A stretch of DNA of 64,000 nt from sequence record LR535910.1; one strand, 5' to 3'. The position numbers and the translations under genes were made by a program. This document shows positions 5,850 through 49,551 of this stretch, in pieces; position 1 is the first letter of the stretch, and every line of letters starts with the position of its first letter. The notes beneath the pieces are model-generated. The model did not search any database, was not told where the DNA came from, and saw only the letters and a program-made list of their open reading frames with translations.

Positions 5850-6725
5850 TTAGCGCATCTGGTTGGCCATCTGCTCGTCGGAGACAGAGTTGTAGCCACC
5901 TGGGGTTGCGTTGACGTCCGGGTTGATACCATCGGTCTGCTGAGACGGAGTAAGCCATAGTTTGCGTTCGTAAGGACGCAGACCGTACAGCTTCATACGA
6001 TCCAGCTCTTTCGCAGCGGCCTGCATCGGACCCCAACCTGTCCATTGCTGGGAGGTAAAGGCGATTGACAGTTCGTTAATCTGCGGACCGGTGTTGGTTT
6101 CACGCTCACCGATATCCTGGCCAGCGGTTTCCGGAATCATGTTCGTTAACCACCACGCGTTCTGCGGTTTACGCTGATACGCATCTGGCTCGATGAACAG
6201 CACGGTCATGCTGTACATATCCGGCAGGTGGTCAGGAACGTTCGGGTTGATTGCGGCCAGGCCTGGATGACCAGTCTGGGGATCACAAACACCGTAAACC
6301 AGCCACGCCCACAGCATGTTTTGGTACACCTTCCCGAGTTTATCCGGGGTGGTGAAGGTAACAGAGGACAGTGCTTCCGTTACCAGACCAGCTTCATACT
6401 GGGTACGGTTGTTACGGCCCTGCTGAGTTTCAACAGCCGCATGGCTCAGGGTTTTATCCAGGCCAGTAATCTCGGAGTGAACCTCGATAAAGGACTTGAT
6501 AGCCTGACGCCACATCTGCGGGTTCGGCATGTAATCCACCCAACGAGGGAATTCCATGACGCGCGCAATGACGTTACGACGCAGACGAGAGGCGTTAGTA
6601 ACGAACTTGCCAACCTGTCCAACCGGGCCGTTTTGGCCCGAGGAGAACGCGTTGACCATATCGTACTGGCCGCCGTCGACGTGCAGACCCTGATCAGGCA
6701 AAATGAGACGATCTTTGATTGCCAT
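5850..6725 (-). CDS. Tail tube protein (phiKZ gp30-like)
   Basis: 291 aa directly downstream of the sheath; size and position match the phiKZ-like tube; high-expression codon bias. Confidence 0.75.
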   Translation of the reverse strand: MAIKDRLILPDQGLHVDGGQYDMVNAFSSGQNGPVGQVGKFVTNASRLRRNVIARVMEFPRWVDYMPNPQMWRQAIKSFIEVHSEITGLDKTLSHAAVETQQGRNNRTQYEAGLVTEALSSVTFTTPDKLGKVYQNMLWAWLVYGVCDPQTGHPGLAAINPNVPDHLPDMYSMTVLFIEPDAYQRKPQNAWWLTNMIPETAGQDIGERETNTGPQINELSIAFTSQQWTGWGPMQAAAKELDRMKLYGLRPYERKLWLTPSQQTDGINPDVNATPGGYNSVSDEQMANQMR

Positions 6726-6728
6726 CTA

Positions 6729-8774
6729 TTAGCTCTCCCGACGGTAAACTTTGATAGTGGTGTTGAACTGGGTGAGCAGCACACCGCCTTCAGCGATCAG
6801 GTCCAGCGTCACAGAGTAACCATTGGATTTATCGTCTGCAGTGAAGTACGCCTTCGGAGTGACGACAGCAACGTTATCGAGACGGCCTTCCAGACGTTCG
6901 ATAATTTTGTTCTCAATCATCTTCGCACGTTCATCATCCGTCATGGCCGCTTCGCCAGACATGTCCGCCCATACACGGTCGGAAACACGATAGACGTAGG
7001 TCATCATGAAGTTGAACAGGGCGTTGTTCAGTACAGAACGATCTTCGCTGTAGATTGACTGAATCGCCGGAATGAACAAGCGATAGTAGTCGTAGGAACG
7101 GGCAGTGATCAGCGACACATCCCAGTCAGACGCATACACTTCGTTGCCTTTCCACGGCATACTCAGGTCAGTCAGATCTTCGATAATCGTCAGTTCGCCA
7201 CGGCTGAAACGATAAGCCGGTTTTGCACGACCGTCGCCTGCACCCAGGTACTTCGAGAAGAAGTTCGCCAGGGAGTAGTTCATCGGAACAGGCTTCTTGT
7301 AGGAAGAGTTCTTGATGAACGCCGATTGGCCGGTGACCATACCACGTGCAGCCGGAGTGCCGTAATAGGCAGATTCCGGTACCGCTGTGATCAATTCGAT
7401 CAGGGCGATTTTTGCACTTTCTTCTGTCTGCTCATCGTTACGGCCTTGGCTGTAAACGTGAGTCGCCAGCGTCAAGAAGGTGTTACGTGAACGACCGATG
7501 AAGTTCACGAGCGCAGCTTTAGTATCGAAGCTAAAGCCAGAGTCCCAGAAACAACCCAGCGAGTATTTCAGCTCATTGTCGTAACGGACTTTACCGCCAT
7601 CCGGGAACAGCAGCATTTCACGGCGAACGAGTTCGTCGTAAACGTCGTTGTTCATGGTACCATCGCTACCACCTTGCAGGTAGTGGATGTTGGATGCGGA
7701 GAACACAACTTTACCGGTTTCAGTAGCCGGGTTTACCTGAAGACCATCGTAAGGCTGGCCCAGTAAATCATAGCCGCCAAAGATGTCAACCATATACGGG
7801 TCAGCAGGCGCATCAGTTGTGATAGCGGCCTGAGCCAAGCCCAGTACAGTTTCCAGGTTCTCGCGATACAGATAGAACTGCTCGAAAGGACCATAATCTG
7901 GCAGCTCGCCAATGTCAGGCATCGTCTGACGATATGCATCCGCAACAACAACTTCGAAGTCGAGTTGCGTTCTCATCGGCTGATAGTATGCATCGGGCTT
8001 AAAGCTAAAATTGATGCTACTCATGCCAGTGAGAGTTTTCCACACTACCGGAGAAGTCACGCCTGCCAGGGTTTCGAACCATTGCAGGGTGTAAACACGA
8101 CCACCGACTTCATTTTGATAGGAGGAGGTCAGAGCCGGGCTGGATTTCTCGCTGAGTGGGATCAGTTTGAAACCGAAACCGTTGACGTCAGCACCCGCAT
8201 ACGGGCCTGCGATATCGAACAACGGATACAGCTTCGATTTCGTGCCGCCTTCGCCAGTCATCGTCCCTTCGATAACCACACCTGCGCCGATGGCCGGGGT
8301 AGTTTCGTCGATTACGACAGAACGGAAGACGATTACCAAACCGTCAACTTGTTCTTTGATCTTGGGCTTGCCCGAGTTGTCGTACTGAACGATCCCGTTG
8401 CTGTCGCGTTCGTAGGACGGAACTTTCGTTTCGAGTACGTCGGCGAATACGCGAACACTTGCGGTTTTCGCATCTTCAGGGATCAAGCGCTGATACATAC
8501 ACTCGTTTGCGTTAGCGTTGAACATCGCCTGATAGGGCGTGTTGAACGTCGCGTAGGGGCCTCGCAAGTCAAAGACATTGCGACCAAGCAGAGACAGTGC
8601 ATTATCCCCGGTTAACGGGAACGCCTCGTTGTCTACCCCGCGCGCGGCAAAGGTGAAGATCAGCGGCTTATGAATTGCGTCACCCGTAGGGGTACGCACA
8701 AGCTCGGGGACAGAGTTATCCTGCCAACCTTGCTTGTTATTCAACGGCGCGCCGTTTCGTGGAATAAAAGTCAT
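6729..8774 (-). CDS. Contractile tail sheath protein (phiKZ gp29-like)
   Basis: 681 aa; GGSDG and FWDSGFSFDTK motifs; C-terminal sheath-like domain; sheath-tube order. Confidence 0.85.
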   Translation of the reverse strand: MTFIPRNGAPLNNKQGWQDNSVPELVRTPTGDAIHKPLIFTFAARGVDNEAFPLTGDNALSLLGRNVFDLRGPYATFNTPYQAMFNANANECMYQRLIPEDAKTASVRVFADVLETKVPSYERDSNGIVQYDNSGKPKIKEQVDGLVIVFRSVVIDETTPAIGAGVVIEGTMTGEGGTKSKLYPLFDIAGPYAGADVNGFGFKLIPLSEKSSPALTSSYQNEVGGRVYTLQWFETLAGVTSPVVWKTLTGMSSINFSFKPDAYYQPMRTQLDFEVVVADAYRQTMPDIGELPDYGPFEQFYLYRENLETVLGLAQAAITTDAPADPYMVDIFGGYDLLGQPYDGLQVNPATETGKVVFSASNIHYLQGGSDGTMNNDVYDELVRREMLLFPDGGKVRYDNELKYSLGCFWDSGFSFDTKAALVNFIGRSRNTFLTLATHVYSQGRNDEQTEESAKIALIELITAVPESAYYGTPAARGMVTGQSAFIKNSSYKKPVPMNYSLANFFSKYLGAGDGRAKPAYRFSRGELTIIEDLTDLSMPWKGNEVYASDWDVSLITARSYDYYRLFIPAIQSIYSEDRSVLNNALFNFMMTYVYRVSDRVWADMSGEAAMTDDERAKMIENKIIERLEGRLDNVAVVTPKAYFTADDKSNGYSVTLDLIAEGGVLLTQFNTTIKVYRRES

Positions 8775-8812
8775 GGAACGTCTCCATATATTCGTCTTAA
8801 AGACCTGATGGT

Positions 8813-8817
8813 CATAC
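8813..8817 (-). promoter_or_regulatory. Putative late promoter (GTATG) for the sheath/tube operon
   Basis: CATAC on the + strand 39 nt upstream of the sheath ATG. The phiKZ late consensus is TATG; a motif this short is weak evidence alone. Confidence 0.4.
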
Positions 8818-8831
8818 TAAGGATCATACTC

Positions 8832-9737
8832 ATGGCACTCGAAAACGCTTACAGCGGTAATCCCTTTAATGCACTTGACCTTACTCGCACCAAGGCAGAC
8901 CTGGAATTAGCCCGTAAACTTAACCAAACTGTCGCACAGTCCGATGAAGTTCATTACGTTGTTGAGACCGCTGATGTAAAACCGTTTCCTTTGCCGATTG
9001 TTATCGGCGACGACGTTTATGTATACGCAGCCACGTTTACCACGCTGGATAAGACCAACGAGCTAAAAATACGAAACCCAGTCGAACACGCATTGCGTCT
9101 CGACCAGGCTCGCTGGGAATTGGTGTGGAAACGGAGTAATGGTAAGCTTGCTGCACTGATGGCACAGATGCCCTACCACCATGAGATTTTCAGCAAATGG
9201 GTGTCGGATGCGATTACCCACACGTTTGCACTTGCTCCATATCAAAGTGGGCAAATCAAAGCGTTGGCTGCATTGTTCTCTGTGGGACAGTTCTATAATC
9301 ACGTCGAAGATGATGTGAAAGCTTTACGTTTGCAGCAGATGCTGGAGCAACAATTAGGCTTACCTGCGGAACTGTTTGAATCAGTGACAGGCCACACAGA
9401 ATATCTTTTCCCGCGTAATATCGCAGAATTCGTCGAAATGGTGCAGGCTGCAGATATCACTCCGCGGGTGCGTGACCTGAGCATTCTGTCTCTGCAGCAG
9501 ATGTTGAATACCAGCTTCTTCGGGGTGAGTTATGAAAAACAACTCGCTACTAGCGCCATCGAATATCCGCCTAGTCTCTTCGTTATGATTAAGGCTTGTC
9601 TGGATAATAACATGTTTAACCGCAGTCGGTTAGGTGGGATTGTGAAGAAGTCAGACACCGCTAAGAAACGCGATAAGTTTGAATTCACCTACAACCTTCT
9701 GATGAATCAAAACACCAAACCACTGAACATCAAGTAA
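8832..9737 (+). CDS. Virion structural protein (phiKZ gp28-like)
   Basis: 301 aa from ATG 8832 (AAGGA SD); divergent from the sheath; first gene of the conserved block leading to the terminase. Confidence 0.7.
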   Translation: MALENAYSGNPFNALDLTRTKADLELARKLNQTVAQSDEVHYVVETADVKPFPLPIVIGDDVYVYAATFTTLDKTNELKIRNPVEHALRLDQARWELVWKRSNGKLAALMAQMPYHHEIFSKWVSDAITHTFALAPYQSGQIKALAALFSVGQFYNHVEDDVKALRLQQMLEQQLGLPAELFESVTGHTEYLFPRNIAEFVEMVQAADITPRVRDLSILSLQQMLNTSFFGVSYEKQLATSAIEYPPSLFVMIKACLDNNMFNRSRLGGIVKKSDTAKKRDKFEFTYNLLMNQNTKPLNIK

Positions 9738-36297: not shown

Positions 36298-36338
36298 AAC
36301 CGAACTATGATTGCAATCACTATTAAGGAATATTTAAA

Positions 36339-38192
36339 ATGGTAAAAATCGTTGACTCTAACAACAACGCTCAGCAGAACAACACTCAGACTCAAGACAC
36401 CGCACCACTGGGCGGTCTGGGCAACGAGACTGTAAAAGTGCAAACTGCTGTGCCGGGTACTTCTACTGTCAGCCAATTCGATAACGCATTTGGCATCCGC
36501 AACATCAGCACCTATGCAATGCACTTCGTCAACCTCCTGGACGAGCTGAAGAAAAGCAACGAATACCTCAACGCATTCCGCTGGGGCACCATCGCCGGCG
36601 TAGGTAACGAAATGGGTTCCGCGGCGTATGTCGCAGGCCAATGGCAGGGCCACTGGCTGTACGGTATTATCTTCTTTGAACGCGGTCAGTCTCTGCGTCT
36701 GAAAGAAACTACCAACAACGGCCAGGAAGACTACTACACCATCACTGAACTGTTCAACAAAGACGTGCTGGCAGTAGTACAGAAAAACATCATGGAAGCG
36801 CATGGTCTGACCAATGCGAACTTCATGATCATCAACTCCGTACCAGACCTGGGTAAAGTTCTGGATGCTGAGTGGGCACGTACTCTGATGGGTCAGATGA
36901 TGATGGGCATCTTCGGTCGTATCGCAGGCTACCTGGGTACGCTGAACCTGCGTAAGCATGACCGTTATCAGGCTGCAGTAATGCCGCTGGAAGATGGTGC
37001 GGTTGTGGATGCTAACGGCCACGCACAACGTGCTGATTTCGCAATCACCGTTGAGCACAGCCCAAGCAACGTATCCGACGCCACTCCGACTCTGCTGGAC
37101 ACCAATCAGGTACAGGTGTATCCGCGTGTATCCGGTACTGGTTTCGTCAACATGCGTTTCACCGGTCAGAAGCCTGTCGTTAACGGCGTTTACGACCTGA
37201 AACAGCTGCAGGCTGAAATCGTAGTAAGTCTGGTCGATTCTCAAACTGAAGGTGCAATGGCACCGTATGAACGTCAACTGCTGCTGCTGGCTGCATTTGC
37301 AGAAATCGCGGCAATCGGTGGCTGGCGTGACCTGTTTGTGAAACGTCTGAACAAACAAGATCGCAAGTTCTCCCGTGTGGCAGAATACCTGTCCTGGGGT
37401 GCTGACGCTCGTCCTGATGTATCCAAAATCGACGGTAGCCGTGAAGCCATCGAAGGTTGCCTGGATATGTTCGCACCGCGTGAAGCAGCACTGGTAGTTA
37501 GCCATCGTGCCGGTAACGGTCTGGGTGGTCTGTCTACTATGCTGTCTGAAATTGCGGTCGGTTACGACAACTCTCTGAAACAGCTGCTCGCTATTCTGAA
37601 TTCCATGTCCCCGCGTGATCAGAACGGCGAAGTTGTTGCAGCGACCAGCTTCACTGCAGTATTTGCTTCTGCACTGAAAGCACAGCTGGGCGATGCCTTC
37701 AATGGTACCATCCATTGCAGCCACATCGTGAAAGCAGCCGTACCGACTGTTTCCGGTGTTTACACCGGTACTGCACAGAAACGTAGCTTCCAGGATATGG
37801 ACCTGATTTCCGTTGTTACCAAACTGGGTGATAACGCGAACGACGTCTATAGCTACCTGAACGCACAGTCCTACAGCCACCGTGAACTGAACGAGCGTCA
37901 ACAGCGTATCTACATGCTGAAACTGGCCGCTTCTCTGTTCGCATCCAAAGCACCGCAAGCTACCGGTGAATCTCTGGATATGGCTATCAACCCGATCTTC
38001 GGTAAATGCCTGCTGGACTTCGTCCGTAACAATTGCACCTGGTCTATGACTGGTGTAAATGCCTACAACACGATGGCGACCTCTCTGTTCTTCAACAACG
38101 GTGGGGAAGACTTCACGCTGTCTGGCAACGGCCTGTCTGCAAGCGGTTCCGATTTCGGTCTGGGCGTGTCTCTGAGCAACTTCAAACTGTAA
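36339..38192 (+). CDS. chmA: Chimallin, major phage nuclear shell protein
   Basis: 617 aa; extreme high-expression codon bias; low-complexity N-terminus and extended C-terminus; directly upstream of nvRNAP beta'-N (phiKZ gp54/gp55 order); tandem early promoters. Confidence 0.8.
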   Translation: MVKIVDSNNNAQQNNTQTQDTAPLGGLGNETVKVQTAVPGTSTVSQFDNAFGIRNISTYAMHFVNLLDELKKSNEYLNAFRWGTIAGVGNEMGSAAYVAGQWQGHWLYGIIFFERGQSLRLKETTNNGQEDYYTITELFNKDVLAVVQKNIMEAHGLTNANFMIINSVPDLGKVLDAEWARTLMGQMMMGIFGRIAGYLGTLNLRKHDRYQAAVMPLEDGAVVDANGHAQRADFAITVEHSPSNVSDATPTLLDTNQVQVYPRVSGTGFVNMRFTGQKPVVNGVYDLKQLQAEIVVSLVDSQTEGAMAPYERQLLLLAAFAEIAAIGGWRDLFVKRLNKQDRKFSRVAEYLSWGADARPDVSKIDGSREAIEGCLDMFAPREAALVVSHRAGNGLGGLSTMLSEIAVGYDNSLKQLLAILNSMSPRDQNGEVVAATSFTAVFASALKAQLGDAFNGTIHCSHIVKAAVPTVSGVYTGTAQKRSFQDMDLISVVTKLGDNANDVYSYLNAQSYSHRELNERQQRIYMLKLAASLFASKAPQATGESLDMAINPIFGKCLLDFVRNNCTWSMTGVNAYNTMATSLFFNNGGEDFTLSGNGLSASGSDFGLGVSLSNFKL

Positions 38193-44028: not shown

Positions 44029-44688
44029 ATGATGATTAACCAAGAAATTTTCAAAGACAAATGGCTTTACCCGCAGACCGAACCGGATCAGCAAAACCGT
44101 ACGCGTAAACTCAACATCGAACCGAATGATTTCAACGGTGATGTTGAAACTATGAAGTTTAGCTACTCCTTTGGTAAGGGCGAAGGTCTCTATTTCTCTG
44201 CGCCGATTACGGTTTGCCGTACCATTATCGAAGCTCTGCAGGATTGTCTGCGTAAGAGCGAAAAGAGTATGCTGAAGTTTACTAACGAAAACGGCAACAA
44301 ACCGCCCGTTAGTCTGATTGTTGGCCGTGAAGACAACCTGGTACCGTTCATCGCTATTGCCGGTGAAATCCAGGGCGTTGGTGCCCGCCAGAAGAAGTTC
44401 TACTTCTCCTACCCGAAAGGTTTCCGTATTTTCCGCGACGGCCAGCAGGTTTCTGATTTAGAACTTGCCGAGCGCTGCGCACGTGCGTTTATCACTAACT
44501 TCGAGAAGTTCTTACAGAACCTGGAAGAGAAATATAAGCCGCGTGAATTCCAGCAAGGTGGTGGTAGCTTCGGTCGTGGTGGATACGGCGGTGGCCAGGG
44601 TGGTGGTCAGCGTAGCGGCGGCGGTTATCAACAGCAGCAACAATCTGCACCTCCAGCAACCACTGATTCTTACGACGAATTCCTCTAA
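44029..44688 (+). CDS. chmC: ChmC-like nucleus-associated RNA-binding protein (phiKZ gp67-like)
   Basis: Directly upstream of the sigma-like nvRNAP subunit; RGG/YGG/polyQ disordered tail ending DSYDEFL; AAGGA SD. Confidence 0.6.
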   Translation: MMINQEIFKDKWLYPQTEPDQQNRTRKLNIEPNDFNGDVETMKFSYSFGKGEGLYFSAPITVCRTIIEALQDCLRKSEKSMLKFTNENGNKPPVSLIVGREDNLVPFIAIAGEIQGVGARQKKFYFSYPKGFRIFRDGQQVSDLELAERCARAFITNFEKFLQNLEEKYKPREFQQGGGSFGRGGYGGGQGGGQRSGGGYQQQQQSAPPATTDSYDEFL

Positions 44689-44823: not shown

Positions 44824-46458
44824 ATGAAAATTATGAAGATTAAAGACCGGATGACAATCGAGCATCATGGTCAAGAGGTCACGTTTATTGGCTTACGTTA
44901 TCGGAAGGATAACAACGCACCCGACTACATCACTGTTAAAGGTAAACAGATTGCACGCGACAACATTCTCTTCATGGAATTACAACGCGTGTGGGATTAT
45001 TTAACGCCAGACGAACAAGATGAACTGTTCATGGCGTATCTGATGCTGGACGAGCTGGCAAACGAATCGACGGAAACGCAGCGTAAGCACATGCCGAAGA
45101 TTGTGCAGACGATTGCGAAGTTCCACAAGGCCGAAGTGTATCGTAAGCTGTATCCCATCGATAAGCTGTGGATTCCGCAGAACATGGAAGATACGCACGA
45201 TGAAATGAACAGTAATTATCCGGAAGCGATGACGTACATTCGTCCGGACTATTACGAGTTGTTGATACTGGTCCTGATGATTAAACCGTATATTCCGGTG
45301 TTCCTCACCATGGGGACGTTCCCGATAGGTAAGAACTTGCCAATCGAAACACACCGGAAAATGGTGTACAATCTGACATACTGTCTGGAGATGCTTCAAG
45401 ACACGGAAGTCATGTCTTTACCTGCTATTCCGAAACTGCGTGGGTTCCTACAGACAGTGATGGAAAAGGTAGAAAAAGAACTGGCAAACAAAGGTACGAA
45501 CAGCACCAGTTTGTCGGTACTGGCTACGGTGCGGGGCTATGGCACGGATATGATGGAAGATTATATCCTGGCGTATGCTATTATTAAATTGTTGGCTGTC
45601 CGTGAAGTCGGTGGTGAATTACCGGTTGAAATCATGGTTAACAACAATATCGTCACCGGCATGTATTTTCTGGTTAAACAAGAGATTGAAACAGGTTTTG
45701 CAAACAAAATCTCTAACCAGCCGGTGCTGTTAAAAGCGCATCCGGAAAGTGTGGTATTCAATGGCGAAAAGGGTAAGATAAACGCCATGGATTTGGTGCA
45801 GGCACGTTCTCCTGCACAGATGAAAGAATACGTCCGTACCGAGTACGTATTTAAAGAATACCGCTCTTTCTTGAAAACAATGCGTCTGGATAATGCCGCT
45901 CCAGCAGATGTTAAGTTATTGATTGATTCGCAACTGGCAACACATGACGGTCCTGTCTATACGTTGCACGAATGGTTAGTCGCATTAGCACTCCATCGTA
46001 GCGCGCATTATAAGACGTATACTGAATGTGGACCAGAAGCGTTTCGCTACGGTATGGCGTTGGCACAGGCAACTTATCTCAATTATGGAATGTATGACGT
46101 TGCGCAACTATTAAGTTGCAATATGGTGCGTTCTGAGATGTCCGCCGGTTATGCAGCCGACCCAATTCGATCTGAACTCAAAGCAGATTTAGATAGATAT
46201 TATCTTCAGGAGTATCGCAACCCGCGTAATCTCGAACCGCAATCTACACCACGGGAATCACTGACCTTGTTACACAAGGATCACATCAACCCGTATCTGT
46301 TCCATCTCAGGGCTACACCAGAAGCAGCTGCGCTGCTGAAGTGTGAGACGGATCAGCCAAACTATATACCTCACTTGTCACTGCACAATAGCCTGGCGGA
46401 GTTTATGGTGTTGAATGCACGTCGCAAGTTAGAAGAAGTTGAATGGTTTAATTCTTAA
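44824..46458 (+). CDS. nvRNAP promoter-specificity (sigma-like) subunit (phiKZ gp68-like)
   Basis: 544 aa, helical; position in the conserved gp67-68-69-70-71/73-74-75 block; early promoter upstream. Confidence 0.65.
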   Translation: MKIMKIKDRMTIEHHGQEVTFIGLRYRKDNNAPDYITVKGKQIARDNILFMELQRVWDYLTPDEQDELFMAYLMLDELANESTETQRKHMPKIVQTIAKFHKAEVYRKLYPIDKLWIPQNMEDTHDEMNSNYPEAMTYIRPDYYELLILVLMIKPYIPVFLTMGTFPIGKNLPIETHRKMVYNLTYCLEMLQDTEVMSLPAIPKLRGFLQTVMEKVEKELANKGTNSTSLSVLATVRGYGTDMMEDYILAYAIIKLLAVREVGGELPVEIMVNNNIVTGMYFLVKQEIETGFANKISNQPVLLKAHPESVVFNGEKGKINAMDLVQARSPAQMKEYVRTEYVFKEYRSFLKTMRLDNAAPADVKLLIDSQLATHDGPVYTLHEWLVALALHRSAHYKTYTECGPEAFRYGMALAQATYLNYGMYDVAQLLSCNMVRSEMSAGYAADPIRSELKADLDRYYLQEYRNPRNLEPQSTPRESLTLLHKDHINPYLFHLRATPEAAALLKCETDQPNYIPHLSLHNSLAEFMVLNARRKLEEVEWFNS

Positions 46459-46470
46459 GGAGTATTTAAA

Positions 46471-48171
46471 ATGCAGCTTGTAAATCTACTGATGTATCCG
46501 GTCTACGATGTTCCAGAGCAAGTTCGTCGCCGCATCGGCTTTAACGCATCGACGGGTGCACTGGATGACTTAGCAGCAGCGGTTGAACTGGGCGGGGAAA
46601 AAGCTGTGGGAACACAGCAGTATCAAGAAGCATTATCTGCCATCGTGGGCTTCGATGGCACCCAGAATGGTTTTGAGCGTCCATTCATCAACGTGTCCGA
46701 TGATGACAATCGTCCTGTACAGTTCCAATGGGAATCACGTGATACCGGTATCTTTAACTTCGTGGCGGTGTTTATTGCTAAACCTCTGAATGCAACACGC
46801 ACTCAGGAAACGCAATACATCGTATCCGGTTATACCAGTCAGGCAGAAACCAGCCTGGGTAGCTTGCTGCCGGACGATATGGTGTTGTACATTAACGACA
46901 TCTACGGCTTACAGGCAACGTATACACACGATGCCCTGGGCGGCAAAACATTGAACCCAGACTCATTCCGTCTACTGGATAACTACGTTTTATCGAAAGC
47001 GCTGTCTGTTGAAGGCCAAACAGAAAGTACGGTAGATATCATTTCGATCGCGAAAGCAGCGGATATGGTAAAACGTATTGAAATGAACAGTGGTGAGAAG
47101 TTCGTCCCTACGAGCGACTCTGTGCTATCCGCAACTAGTAGCTCTGCACCACAGTTGATGGTATCCCAACTCCAGCGTCCAGAAAACTACGTATCTGCCA
47201 TCAGTAATGCGTATCTGGCAAGCTCTGGGGTAGATACCGAACTCGGTAGCGTGGAAAGCTTCTTTGCAGGTAATAACTCCATCGGCGTTGAATCTGAATT
47301 GAAGCAACGTGGTGTTATCCGTAACTACAGCAACCACGAACTGATTGCTGCGATGCGTCAAGCACTCCAGAACGGGATGTCTGATGTATCTGGCGGCTGG
47401 AAAGCAACCAGTAAGGCGACGTTCCGTTTGGCTGATTTGCGTAATGCGATTGTCAACCCAATGCGGTTGGATGAATGTATCCGTGAATCGCTGGCGCTGG
47501 CAAGTCGCCGTGGGTTGGGTGCAGGGCTGGTTAACCAAACCGACCACTGGATTGGACGTAATGGCTTCTCCACGCAGGGTAGTCTAGTTGCGTATGATCT
47601 GGCTATGTCTATCGGGCCGATTATGTCACGTAACCTGATTGGTGAAGTGAGCTTTGTCTTTGATAACCGCAACACAGATATCATGATAGAGCCTACGCTG
47701 GAAGTTATTCCTAACTCAGTCAGCAGCATCACGCACCATCAGTTACCTGCTGCGTTAGGTCGTCGTTTCTTGCAGAACATGAAAGAAGCGATGGTTCAGG
47801 TTACTAAACATAACCATATTCGCTGCCACATGCTGGTCACCGCATTGTTGGGGACCGTTACTCGTATTGAAATCCGTGTCGACGACGAACCGCTGGAATA
47901 TTACACCTACGCGTCGTTTATGCAATTCCGTCTCCATACCGGCAACACCACCGATCTCAAATACGTTGGTGAGCTGGCACAGAACACCGCAACGCTGTTG
48001 AAAGCCGTGGAAGAAGGTTATACAGAATTCGAGAAAGGCCAAGGCCGGGGTCGAATGCTATCTAACATTCCAACTAACACAGGTGGCTTAGATCCTCTCG
48101 GAGGTCTTGACCTGGGTGGTGGCTTAGGCGGTATAGGCGGAAACGGACTCGGCAACGGTCTCATTGATTAA
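46471..48171 (+). CDS. picA: PicA/Imp1-like phage nuclear import factor (phiKZ gp69-like)
   Basis: 566 aa directly after the gp68-like gene. Called mainly on synteny. Confidence 0.6.
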   Translation: MQLVNLLMYPVYDVPEQVRRRIGFNASTGALDDLAAAVELGGEKAVGTQQYQEALSAIVGFDGTQNGFERPFINVSDDDNRPVQFQWESRDTGIFNFVAVFIAKPLNATRTQETQYIVSGYTSQAETSLGSLLPDDMVLYINDIYGLQATYTHDALGGKTLNPDSFRLLDNYVLSKALSVEGQTESTVDIISIAKAADMVKRIEMNSGEKFVPTSDSVLSATSSSAPQLMVSQLQRPENYVSAISNAYLASSGVDTELGSVESFFAGNNSIGVESELKQRGVIRNYSNHELIAAMRQALQNGMSDVSGGWKATSKATFRLADLRNAIVNPMRLDECIRESLALASRRGLGAGLVNQTDHWIGRNGFSTQGSLVAYDLAMSIGPIMSRNLIGEVSFVFDNRNTDIMIEPTLEVIPNSVSSITHHQLPAALGRRFLQNMKEAMVQVTKHNHIRCHMLVTALLGTVTRIEIRVDDEPLEYYTYASFMQFRLHTGNTTDLKYVGELAQNTATLLKAVEEGYTEFEKGQGRGRMLSNIPTNTGGLDPLGGLDLGGGLGGIGGNGLGNGLID

Positions 48172-48183
48172 GGATTATTAACC

Positions 48184-49551
48184 ATGAAATTGATTGAATT
48201 CTACCGTTCGTTTCTGACCTCGCTCGGATACGGATTCGAAGGTGACATGCTGACTATCGATGATGGTCATCCGGCAATGTTCACCTACAACAAAGTGAAG
48301 CGCCGCTTGGTGCTTCCAACTGCAGCGATGATTAAGCGTGGGTTGGAAGATGACGAAGGTAGTGAATGTCATGCGTTCCACCCGCTGTGTGAATCGGTGC
48401 TGGCTGGCGAATCTGGAACGATTCGTTTCCTGAAGAAAGCCATCAACGCGAACCTCTTCCTGAAAAGCTTCGAGTTAATCGATGCGATTTTGGAAACAGC
48501 AGCCGAAGGAAAAAATATCCGTCTGGCAGCGTACAAGAAGTTTTTAAGCGATGTGGTTTGTGCTGACCTGAAAGATCCAACGATGGATAAGAAACTGGTT
48601 CAGAGCTGGCACGCAGTGAAGAACTACGTTTACGGGTTGCTGGAAGAAGATAAAAAGACAAAGATCACCAGTATCTTCATCTCCAGCGATATGACCATTG
48701 AAGGTATCAAATATATCCGTGTGGCGAACTACAAACACATGTTTGAAGAAGAGTCACTGGATGGTACGGCAACATTCTTCGGTGTCAAGCTCCAGCGTAA
48801 GCAGGATAAGGTCATTATCTTTAACCTGCTAACTGCAGTGTTTGGTTGGTATCCTTCGGTTACTGGTTCTAACGATCCGCGTCCGTACTTCGGTTCTTTG
48901 GCACGCGGTTGGGCACAATACGTGACCAACTACAATCAAGTGGTTCGTGGTCTGCGTGACCACACTCCACTGCGTCCGTTAGAAGAAGAATGGATTGGCC
49001 AACTGGATAACATGAGCGTTTATGATAACGTTATCCAAACTCTGCCGTATAATACCGGCCCACGCACCGATCAGGCAACAGACACCACCGCAACGGATTT
49101 CCGTATCGGGCGTACACCTGCCGGCACAAAGCCGGTCGTTGCTTTAGCTTCTCAACAAGCTCCGCAGGAAAATCTTGATCTCAACGATCCGGTAAACTAT
49201 TTCCGTGCGAAGAAAGCGCAACAGGCGTCTTCAGCTAATAGCTTCAATGCGTTAGCACCGAAGATTCAGGAAGCGCTGCGTGAGAACAACGGCCATTTAC
49301 CGAAAGGGACAATTAAAGAACTGTCTCTCGGTGAGGCGCTGCGTGGTAATGCGGTGACGAAAGAAAGTGGTCTGGGTTCTGGTTTGCTGGGAAGTAGTAA
49401 TAATCTCTTGGGGGGTAGCACGCAGTTGGGCGGCGGTAGCACCAACCTCTTAGGAGGGAGTAGTGACGTGTTAGGTGGTCTGGGTGGTTTAGGTGGCGGA
49501 AGTAGCAGCAGTTTAGGCAACCTACCATTCTCATCAGCTAATTTACGTTAA
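48184..49551 (+). CDS. Conserved nucleus-block protein (phiKZ gp70-like) with a Gly/Leu/Ser low-complexity tail
   Basis: 455 aa; FHPLCES motif; AAGGA SD. Confidence 0.7.
   Translation: MKLIEFYRSFLTSLGYGFEGDMLTIDDGHPAMFTYNKVKRRLVLPTAAMIKRGLEDDEGSECHAFHPLCESVLAGESGTIRFLKKAINANLFLKSFELIDAILETAAEGKNIRLAAYKKFLSDVVCADLKDPTMDKKLVQSWHAVKNYVYGLLEEDKKTKITSIFISSDMTIEGIKYIRVANYKHMFEEESLDGTATFFGVKLQRKQDKVIIFNLLTAVFGWYPSVTGSNDPRPYFGSLARGWAQYVTNYNQVVRGLRDHTPLRPLEEEWIGQLDNMSVYDNVIQTLPYNTGPRTDQATDTTATDFRIGRTPAGTKPVVALASQQAPQENLDLNDPVNYFRAKKAQQASSANSFNALAPKIQEALRENNGHLPKGTIKELSLGEALRGNAVTKESGLGSGLLGSSNNLLGGSTQLGGGSTNLLGGSSDVLGGLGGLGGGSSSSLGNLPFSSANLR

Follow-up and report, generated by a model that had tools for sequence, protein, structure and literature searches.

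Lineage-specific low-complexity tails change in concert on chimallin and other phage-nucleus proteins of chimalliviruses

In the shell of nucleus-forming phages, subunits of chimallin (ChmA) are tied together by flexible linkers with short docking segments at their ends, the C-terminal segments CTS1 and CTS2 and the N-terminal segment NTS; CTS1 and CTS2 dock on neighbouring protomers, and the first 47 residues form a disordered N-tail that is dispensable (Laughlin et al. 2022, PMC9365700). PicA (Imp1) is essential and forms one punctum on the shell, and its role in selective import, like the punctum, is known only for phiKZ, PhiPA3 and Goslar (PMC11087766; 10.1101/2024.03.27.586873). The shell-associated protein ChmC has a disordered N/G-rich C-terminal region, which has been shown in vitro to drive the formation of condensates with RNA (Enustun et al. 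2024, PMC11077065). In PhiPA3, gp61 (ChmC), gp63 (PicA) and gp64, the ortholog of phiKZ gp70, are shell-localised and ChmA-proximal and co-purify with ChmB (10.1101/2023.05.18.541317). Here we analyse a stretch of 64,000 nucleotides from sequence record LR535910.1 (the window), which belongs to a nucleus-forming Salmonella jumbo phage of the SPN3US type (Chimalliviridae, Seoulvirus) and in which the PicA ortholog and the product of the next gene, a gp70-like protein, end in Gly/Leu-rich tails. Over the 5.7 kb around the tails, the window matches several Salmonella phage SPFM genomes at 100% identity and SPN3US at 98.7%.

Two eukaryotic systems resemble such tails. FG-nucleoporins present disordered, almost uncharged, Gly-flanked hydrophobic units at a selective nuclear boundary, and the YG-rich phase of PEX13 in the peroxisomal import pore is a Gly-aromatic low-complexity meshwork that serves as an import conduit outside the nuclear pore. 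A preliminary description of the window had accordingly proposed that the tails may form a cohesive, nucleoporin-like phase at the import site. The chemistry of the tails lends that analogy partial support, but a conserved pore filter is not supported. The tail chemistry is lineage-specific and changes in concert within each phage, on ChmA, PicA, the gp70-like protein and a fourth protein at the position of phiKZ gp124, a pattern more suggestive of a code for attachment to the shell than of a nucleoporin-like filter conserved among these phages. No description of the PicA or gp70 tails or of their co-variation was found in the searchable literature, within which the co-evolving chemistry is new.

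The last 30 residues of PicA in the window contain 14 Gly and 7 Leu (21/30), three charged residues and no Phe, and the last 61 residues of the gp70-like protein contain 19 Gly, 14 Leu, two charged residues and one Phe, in agreement to the residue with the preliminary description. The 39-residue PicA tail and the 61-residue gp70 tail hold approximately 7–8 hydrophobic units each. When the 17,474 30-residue segments of the 61 putative genes of the window were ranked by Gly + Leu content, the three highest values belonged to the tails of PicA (0.70), the gp70-like protein (0.67) and ChmC (0.50), and the next value was 0.40. Against the window's own Gly + Leu frequency, the binomial P values of the two Gly/Leu tails are 3e-11 and 4e-12. 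The other low-complexity ends that had been pointed out earlier are also present: the Gly-rich tail of the ChmC-like protein is a G/R/Y/Q tail, and the GLG-containing chimallin termini correspond to a PLGGLG stretch in the N-tail and DFGLGV in the C-tail.

AlphaFold2 models based on family alignments place both tails outside the folded parts, which reach predicted local distance difference test (pLDDT) values of 80–96. The last folded element predicted in PicA is a long helix that ends at residue 529, and residues 528–566 have pLDDT values of 33–40. In the gp70-like protein, residues 1–283 have values of about 90, and residues 285–332 and 373–455 are below 50. The Gly and Leu codons of the tails are mixed synonyms and the only tandem repeat is a 9-nt unit in 2.8 copies, so the tails are not fresh slippage products. 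Relatives of PicA at 82–88% identity retain the composition and the end of the tail despite indels, and the end motif GL[IL]D is kept in close kin; the repeat array of the gp70-like protein ends in a conserved motif of the LPF-x-SA-x-L type. More widely, subclades keep their end motifs even where the linkers have gained or lost residues (GL[IL]D or NSLLD in PicA, LPF-x-SA-x-L or GF-x-W in gp70). The Gly/Leu tails are confirmed as real, non-random, disordered ends of two phage-nucleus proteins.

The four syntenic genes were collected from 34 loci (IMG/VR contigs and GenBank phages; L numbers below denote loci), which gave 26 non-redundant representatives. A disordered C-terminal region of gp70, 115–351 residues in length, is present in 26/26 representatives; a tail value of 90 for L011, caused by a stray hidden Markov model (HMM) match, was set aside. 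The length of PicA past the last shared profile position is 91–119 residues in the clade of Seoulvirus and its kin, 88–94 in phiKZ-type phages, 103 in pVa-21 and 79 in LucasX. It is 49–73 residues in ten representatives (RAY, SA002, pEa48, KpHz_2, PhiEaH1, SPLA10, RSF1, MJ359, Moabite and C-ZP2022), and since about 59 of these end residues are folded in the window model, the tail in these ten phages can be no longer than about 14 residues. Only the SPN3US and EaH2/Asesino sublineages have a PicA tail rich in Gly and Leu. The gp70 tail is G/L/S/N-rich in SPN3US and its Erwinia kin, Met/Gln/Pro-rich in phiKZ, PhiPA3, RAY, SA002 and pEa48, Gln/Pro/Asn/aromatic in 201phi2-1 and of RGG/GW type in LucasX, and in six phages (pVa-21, RSF1, SPLA10, PhiEaH1, MJ359 and Moabite) 52–68% of it consists of charged Arg/Asp/Glu. 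FG units are restricted to L004–L007, where the gp70 tail has dense FG repeats (approximately 8 FG in 50 residues) and the PicA tails of these sister lineages have approximately 4–5, and, as NPF/FSFG repeats of the gp70 tail, to the CR5/Derbicus/Phobos type. The idea that tail composition might be conserved across the Chimalliviridae is contradicted by the missing PicA tail in 10/26 representatives and by the heavily charged gp70 tails in six.

The tails of different proteins were compared within phages by the mean same-phage cosine of mean-centred amino-acid composition in 25 representatives, against 20,000 label shuffles. The cosine was 0.495 between the last 40 residues of ChmA and the last 80 of gp70, 0.509 between the last 35 of PicA and the last 80 of gp70, 0.288 between the PicA and ChmA tails, and 0.320 between the first 45 residues of ChmA and the gp70 tail, and in each case 0/20,000 shuffles were as high. 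Controls from the same phages (the ChmC tail, the C-terminal ends of gp68 and gp55, and the gp70 N-domain) showed no co-variation (z <1.7). Within the Seoulvirus-kin clade alone, the values were 0.509 for PicA and gp70 (0/20,000) and 0.36 for the ChmA C-tail and gp70 (20/20,000). A genome-wide compositional bias was rejected as the cause, because these controls do not co-vary and the chemistry is confined to one set of proteins.

The concerted change is also visible in the sequence units. PicA and gp70 have GNSLL in common in phages of the ChrisDB/Caitlin/Huxley type and SFG in L004–7, and both proteins end in ..LGLL or ..MGLI in PhiPA3 and 201phi2-1. The ChmA C-tail is F-rich where gp70 is of the F type, Arg/Ser- or Arg/Asp-rich where gp70 is of the Arg/Asp type, and RG-rich in LucasX. 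In some phages the last residues of ChmA, PicA and gp70 are alike (SFNF/SFNF/GFSF in L012, HFTF/PFSF/NFTF in L017), and last residues also coincide in L014 (SFTL/NFTL). Sharing of the ChmA terminal motif is seen in L012, L013/14, L017 and partly SPLA10, not in the window, phiKZ, PhiPA3 or 201phi2-1. Scored with BLOSUM from the C-terminus, the last 4–8 residues are z 2–3.3 above shuffles, a signal driven by a subset of lineages. The folded core of ChmA follows as well, with 16–21% Asp + Glu in the six phages with Arg/Asp tails versus 8–14% elsewhere (loci L034–L080); the surface charge of the ChmA lattice seems to have shifted along with the chemistry of the tails.

The tail of ChmC behaves differently. 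It resembles the other tails in being a disordered C-terminal tail of a shell-associated protein encoded in the same operon, and differs in having a conserved acidic-aromatic end and a chemistry that is conserved family-wide (34/34 loci) and does not co-vary with the other tails. The preliminary description had counted it as part of the same phase; its chemistry is neither shared with the other tails nor tracks them. The end of the ChmC/Imp6 tail has a family-wide motif of an aromatic residue and two acidic residues followed by I/L-P-F/W or similar (here ..YDEFL, 44640–44685; L001–L033), which resembles a docking motif and might serve Imp1, a binder of Imp6 in phiKZ.

Whole-genome low-complexity scans of SPN3US (as a stand-in for the phage of the window, 98.7% identical over the locus), RSF1 and RAY found the tail chemistry only in the set formed by ChmA, gp70, PicA (where it has a tail) and one further carrier per genome, encoded directly downstream of the gp123-like subunit gene (phrog_2943) of the non-virion RNA polymerase (nvRNAP). 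This carrier is the positional counterpart of phiKZ gp124, and its gene lies approximately 50 kb away. In SPN3US, the gene is located at JN641803 75564–77240 (locus L121, outside the window) and encodes 558 residues (phrog_8185) with an internal Gly/Leu stretch at approximately residues 110–135; phiKZ gp124 has a Met/Gln/Pro/Gly stretch at approximately residues 165–250. The stretch mirrors the gp70 tail in the 18 phages examined, with cosines of 0.742 (gp70 tail) and 0.559 (ChmA C-tail) and null results against the ChmC and gp68 controls. The gp124-like stretch and the gp70 tail have 8.2 exact 4-mers in common versus 2.1 after shuffling, and their common units include NPF (CR5), SGSLLGGG (L012), DDRRSSRR (pVa-21) and QQPMMQQP (SA002).

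Alternatively, the repeats could be strings of short linear motifs that recognise a third partner, distinct from chimallin, which all carriers have in common. This partner might be a phage or host factor that varies from lineage to lineage, such as another part of the shell, a chaperone, or a factor of the cytoskeleton or of transcription, and every carrier would then follow it. Folded domains commonly have NPF- and FG-type units as their ligands. Of all pairs, gp70 and the gp124-like protein match most tightly, the PicA and gp70 ends of phiKZ-type phages match each other (..LGLL in both) better than they match ChmA, and phiKZ gp124 is cited as a binder of host DnaX/FtsZ (PMC11849849). We regard a third partner as distinctly unlikely, since no candidate receptor came out of the analysis and the chimallin tails and core charge also track the chemistry, for which chimallin itself is most simply the partner.

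To place the changes on a phylogeny, a tree was built from two tail-less nvRNAP subunits, gp68 and gp55. The Arg/Asp type appears in three separate lineages (pVa-21; RSF1; the SPLA10–PhiEaH1–MJ359–Moabite clade), and exactly the same phages have it in ChmA as in gp70, each protein having changed three times. Within the L-type clade the F type has two origins, with L004/L005 nested beside a G/L-type EaH2-like phage and CR5/Phobos basal. In a coarse four-class scheme, the class of the gp70 tail changes at least nine times on the tree, and the same class as gp70 is found for the gp124-like protein in 14/18 phages, for ChmA in 14/26 and for ChmC in 6/26.

At the DNA level, no repeats link the tails within the window, and in four phages the longest DNA words in common between the sequences encoding shared units are 9–16 nt, within codon-shuffled nulls. 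Gene conversion or slippage as a source of the shared repeats was rejected on this ground. With DNA likeness no greater than in the nulls, it is at the level of the protein, and not by gene conversion, that the matching is maintained. The same result bears on the view that the tails are non-specific entropic spacers or solubility tags whose shared make-up reflects lineage constraint or drift. Poor positional conservation, frequent indels, the many changes of gp70 composition on the tree, the ability of PicA to do without a tail and shuffle tests uncorrected for relatedness all fit such spacers. They do not readily account for exact repeated units common to genes 10–50 kb apart without DNA similarity, for the failure of ChmC, another disordered tail of the same operon, to follow, for a chemistry restricted genome-wide to one protein set, or for the terminal motifs conserved within subclades. 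Spacers are accordingly an unlikely explanation.

The window's two tails are best explained as the Seoulvirus form of a chemistry that differs by lineage and is found on the tails of shell-associated proteins. In our favoured reading, to which we assign a probability of roughly 0.45, matched low-complexity stickers, present on ChmA as well, would couple PicA, gp70 and the gp124-position protein to the chimallin lattice. The Gly-flanked hydrophobic units (elsewhere Arg/Asp-rich, Q/P/M, NPF or FG units) would make multivalent weak contacts with chimallin's tails, or with the grooves in which those tails dock, and would recruit and hold the carrier proteins on the lattice via a flexible leash, which in some lineages may bear a chimallin-like end motif. 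The role of each protein on the shell would be set by its folded domain, cargo licensing in the case of PicA. The model extends what is established for CTS1 and CTS2: in composition, and in some lineages in its last 4–5 residues, the ChmA tail agrees with the tails that PicA and gp70 have in the same phage. It differs in that the tails are on non-chimallin proteins, the end motifs are unmatched in the window and in 201phi2-1, and docking in the grooves is putative.

Several observations weigh against matched stickers. The co-variation is strong as a pattern but comprises few independent events: there are only 2–3 independent pairs for the Arg/Asp type and two for F/L within the Seoulvirus-kin clade, none discordant, which are too few for significance in sign tests; the truly independent transitions number approximately 5, and the shuffle tests ignore relatedness. 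When only the Seoulvirus-kin clade is considered, the ChmA N-tail fails to follow the gp70 tail. The ends of ChmA (..NFKL), PicA (..GLID) and gp70 (..ANLR) in the window do not match, and in 201phi2-1, for which CTS2 has been solved, the PicA and gp70 ends resemble each other and not CTS2. Ten representatives lack the PicA tail, though their PicA must still reach the shell. Finally, phiKZ gp70 is listed as nuclear and not shell-bound, and did not co-purify with Imp1 in Escherichia coli (10.1101/2024.03.27.586873); phiKZ Imp1 and gp70 were both terminally tagged in these localisation and pull-down experiments (10.1101/2024.03.27.586873). A stricter version, universal mimicry of CTS2, was rejected because of the differing end motifs in the window and 201phi2-1.

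The same data allow the nucleoporin-like proposal to be assessed, according to which the uncharged Gly-hydrophobe tails of PicA, its neighbour, ChmC and chimallin condense into an FG-nucleoporin-like selectivity barrier at the import site. Its chemical part stood: the tails are intrinsically disordered, repetitive and of very low charge, true FG repeats occur in PicA and gp70 of sister lineages, and the concerted change from L to F in several proteins, like with like, fits cohesive interactions; the ChmC tail forms condensates in vitro (PMC11077065). The part concerning a conserved filter at the import site did not. The hydrophobe in the window is Leu and not the Phe of a Phe-Gly unit, the arrays are 30–61 residues long (39 and 61 for the two tails) and not hundreds, and fall short of the dozens of units over 100 or more residues that mark an FG-nucleoporin-like domain, and retention across orthologs is lacking; a conserved, uncharged FG-like filter fails because PicA tails are missing in many orthologs and gp70 tails are hyper-charged in others, to a degree ill-suited to an uncharged sieve. 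The same chemistry is borne by every chimallin protomer and by the gp124-like protein, and is therefore not specific to the import site; the ChmC tail does not take part in it. In addition, mutations that affect import selectivity map to folded PicA surfaces (PMC11087766), and phiKZ gp70 is not among the listed hits of an antisense screen (PMC12571901). A selectivity barrier of this kind thus seems quite improbable. The PEX13 phase, cited in PMC11087766, differs in being a membrane-anchored eukaryotic system; for the phage tails, a channel or conduit, a transport receptor, phase behaviour and cargo-receptor partitioning would all be hypothetical.

The identifications on which these comparisons depend, and which the preliminary description had proposed for confirmation, are borne out: PicA, ChmC and gp70 share PHROG families and gene order with phiKZ gp69, gp67 and gp70, and hold for these two reasons (Table 1). 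The PicA open reading frame (ORF) matches phrog_3141 with an E-value of 6.6e-157 over residues 1–535 (phiKZ gp69 against the same profile, 2.7e-179); a direct profile-to-sequence comparison by hhalign is weak (E 0.014), yet collinear across 425 columns. The gp70-like ORF matches phrog_3520 with 8.7e-135 (phiKZ gp70, 4.1e-122) and phiKZ gp70 itself by BLASTP with 2e-13 over the N-domain, and phiKZ gp67 (ChmC/Imp6) matches phrog_3284 with 6e-80. ChmA was joined to the ORFs at the chimallin position of phiKZ and 201phi2-1 through iterative HMMs, and the 201phi2-1 ORF is the chimallin of PDB 7SQQ (E-value 0). The ChmA of the window is 63% identical to the homolog of phage Stratton, an Asesino relative, and shell formation has been demonstrated for the Asesino chimallin gp039 (PMC11724907). 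The link from SPN3US-type phages to phiKZ was thus made by PHROG profiles, iterative HMMs, gene order and published identifications, not by single-sequence searches: tblastn with PicA gave matches in enterobacterial kin only and none to the phiKZ counterpart, a protein search with ChmA of five Pseudomonas, Serratia and Erwinia phage records gave no match, and neither phmmer with ChmA nor a profile of 13 chimallins matched the PDB. For the gp70 N-domain, no convincing fold relatives were found by Foldseek against the PDB (best E-value 0.12), the best wide match of VIA-align was a designed helical protein (Z 5.8), and the ESM Atlas gave no usable match.

Table 1 Features of the window discussed in the text.
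Feature	Position	Strand	Remarks
Chimallin (ChmA), 617 aa	36339..38192	+	phrog_8316; directly 5' of gp55-like nvRNAP gene; iterative HMM
ChmA disordered N-tail, ~residues 1-45	36339-36473	+	
ChmA C-terminal tail region, ~residues 578-617	38070-38189	+	probably CTS1/CTS2
ChmC/Imp6-like RNA-binding protein, 232 aa	43990..44688	+	phrog_3284, family of phiKZ gp67
ChmC G/Q/R/Y-rich tail with acidic-aromatic end motif	~44530-44685	+	
gp68-like nvRNAP subunit, 544 aa	44824..46458	+	phrog_3209; no low-complexity tail; synteny with phiKZ gp68; used as control
PicA/Imp1 ortholog, 566 aa	46471..48171	+	phrog_3141; predicted folded to ~residue 527
PicA disordered C-tail, residues 528-566	48052..48168	+	from pLDDT; Gly/Leu-rich part 48079-48168
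phiKZ gp70/PhiPA3 gp64 ortholog, 455 aa	48184..49551	+	phrog_3520; folded N-domain 1-283, disordered C-half
gp70-like disordered region, residues 285-455	49036..49548	+	G/L/S/N repeat array in last 61 aa, 49366-49548
Small conserved ORF, 107 aa	49589..49912	-	phrog_3455; syntenic landmark only; between gp70-like and nvRNAP genes, same place in most loci
nvRNAP beta gene, 745 aa	49979-52216	+	phrog_3295 and phrog_3015 for beta and beta'; Pfam RNA_pol_Rpb2_6
nvRNAP beta' gene, 701 aa	52216-54321	+	see beta gene

The order SbcD-like gene, gp66-like gene, ChmC, gp68, PicA, gp70, small minus-strand ORF, nvRNAP beta and beta' is kept in phiKZ and 16 further genera. As in the window, PicA lies between the gp68-like and gp70-like genes in phiKZ, PhiPA3, 201phi2-1, Moabite, RAY, RSF1, pVa-21 and ten other phages, and the ChmA gene is directly upstream of that for the gp55-like nvRNAP subunit in 33/33 loci. 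All carrier genes are interleaved with nvRNAP genes (ChmA–gp55; gp68–PicA–gp70–gp71/74; gp123–gp124), which would fit a role of the gp70 and gp124-like low-complexity regions in organising nvRNAP or its transcripts at the inner face of the shell, the PicA tail joining this hub for polymerase import. The uncharacterised phiKZ gp124 lowers plaquing and alters phage transcription when knocked down by antisense (PMC12571901), nvRNAP import depends on Imp1 (10.64898/2026.09.21.753271), and the polymerase has been suggested to dock on the shell (PMC9365700). The basis of such a hub is gene neighbourhood and one knock-down phenotype, and G/L or Q/P/M chemistry is not nucleic-acid binding, so that we consider it highly improbable.

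Several further features were observed in these genes and genomes. The 34 bases ending in the ATG of ChmA (36308–36341) and of PicA (46440–46473) are 76% alike and share TTAAGGA-x-TATTTAAAATG; from the sequence, this may be a translation-initiation context shared by two early, highly expressed genes. The deposited PicA and gp70 proteins of SPFM5/7/8/9/10/12/14/15/20 (P0029, P0030, P0033, P0034, P0063, P0064, P0066, P0074 and P0076) are scrambled block-wise, with segments in reversed order, and tblastn matches to these records are broken into 5–8 pieces, which looks like an assembly or record artefact in some genomes and not biology. A protein of 913–1002 residues with a strongly acidic low-complexity C-tail is present in SPN3US (JN641803 77974–80715), RAY (6077–8989) and RSF1 (96791–99799) regardless of tail type; its gene adjoins that of the gp124-like protein in SPN3US and RAY and lies approximately 17 kb off in RSF1. 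The lowest complexity in the SPN3US genome is found outside the window in two adjacent minus-strand ORFs (JN641803 143413–144220; 130 and 134 residues) with extreme Cys/Gly/Ser/Thr repeats, which have no relation to the tail chemistry.

Co-evolving tails give a handle, testable by tail swaps, on how proteins are recruited to, and pass across, the chimallin lattice. C-terminal tags, on which most published localisation and pull-down work relied, may mask the relevant motifs. The tail chemistry could show membership of the shell machinery, and in this way it flags two uncharacterised proteins, the gp70-like and the gp124-like protein. A bolder proposal, which we hold to be a long shot, is that a tail code on chimallin and on shell- and nvRNAP-linked proteins builds a thin cohesive layer on the shell, of literal FG type in some lineages. 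This layer would gate or organise traffic and, as its chemistry varies by lineage, would also prevent mixing of shell factors when phages co-infect, as a convergent, programmable analogue of the nucleoporin barrier and a species barrier at once. The tail chemistry could be one reason why co-infecting nucleus-forming phages are incompatible. The occurrence of genuine FG- and NPF-repeat tails on proteins of bacterial viruses also bears on how low-complexity domains for transport and assembly have evolved.

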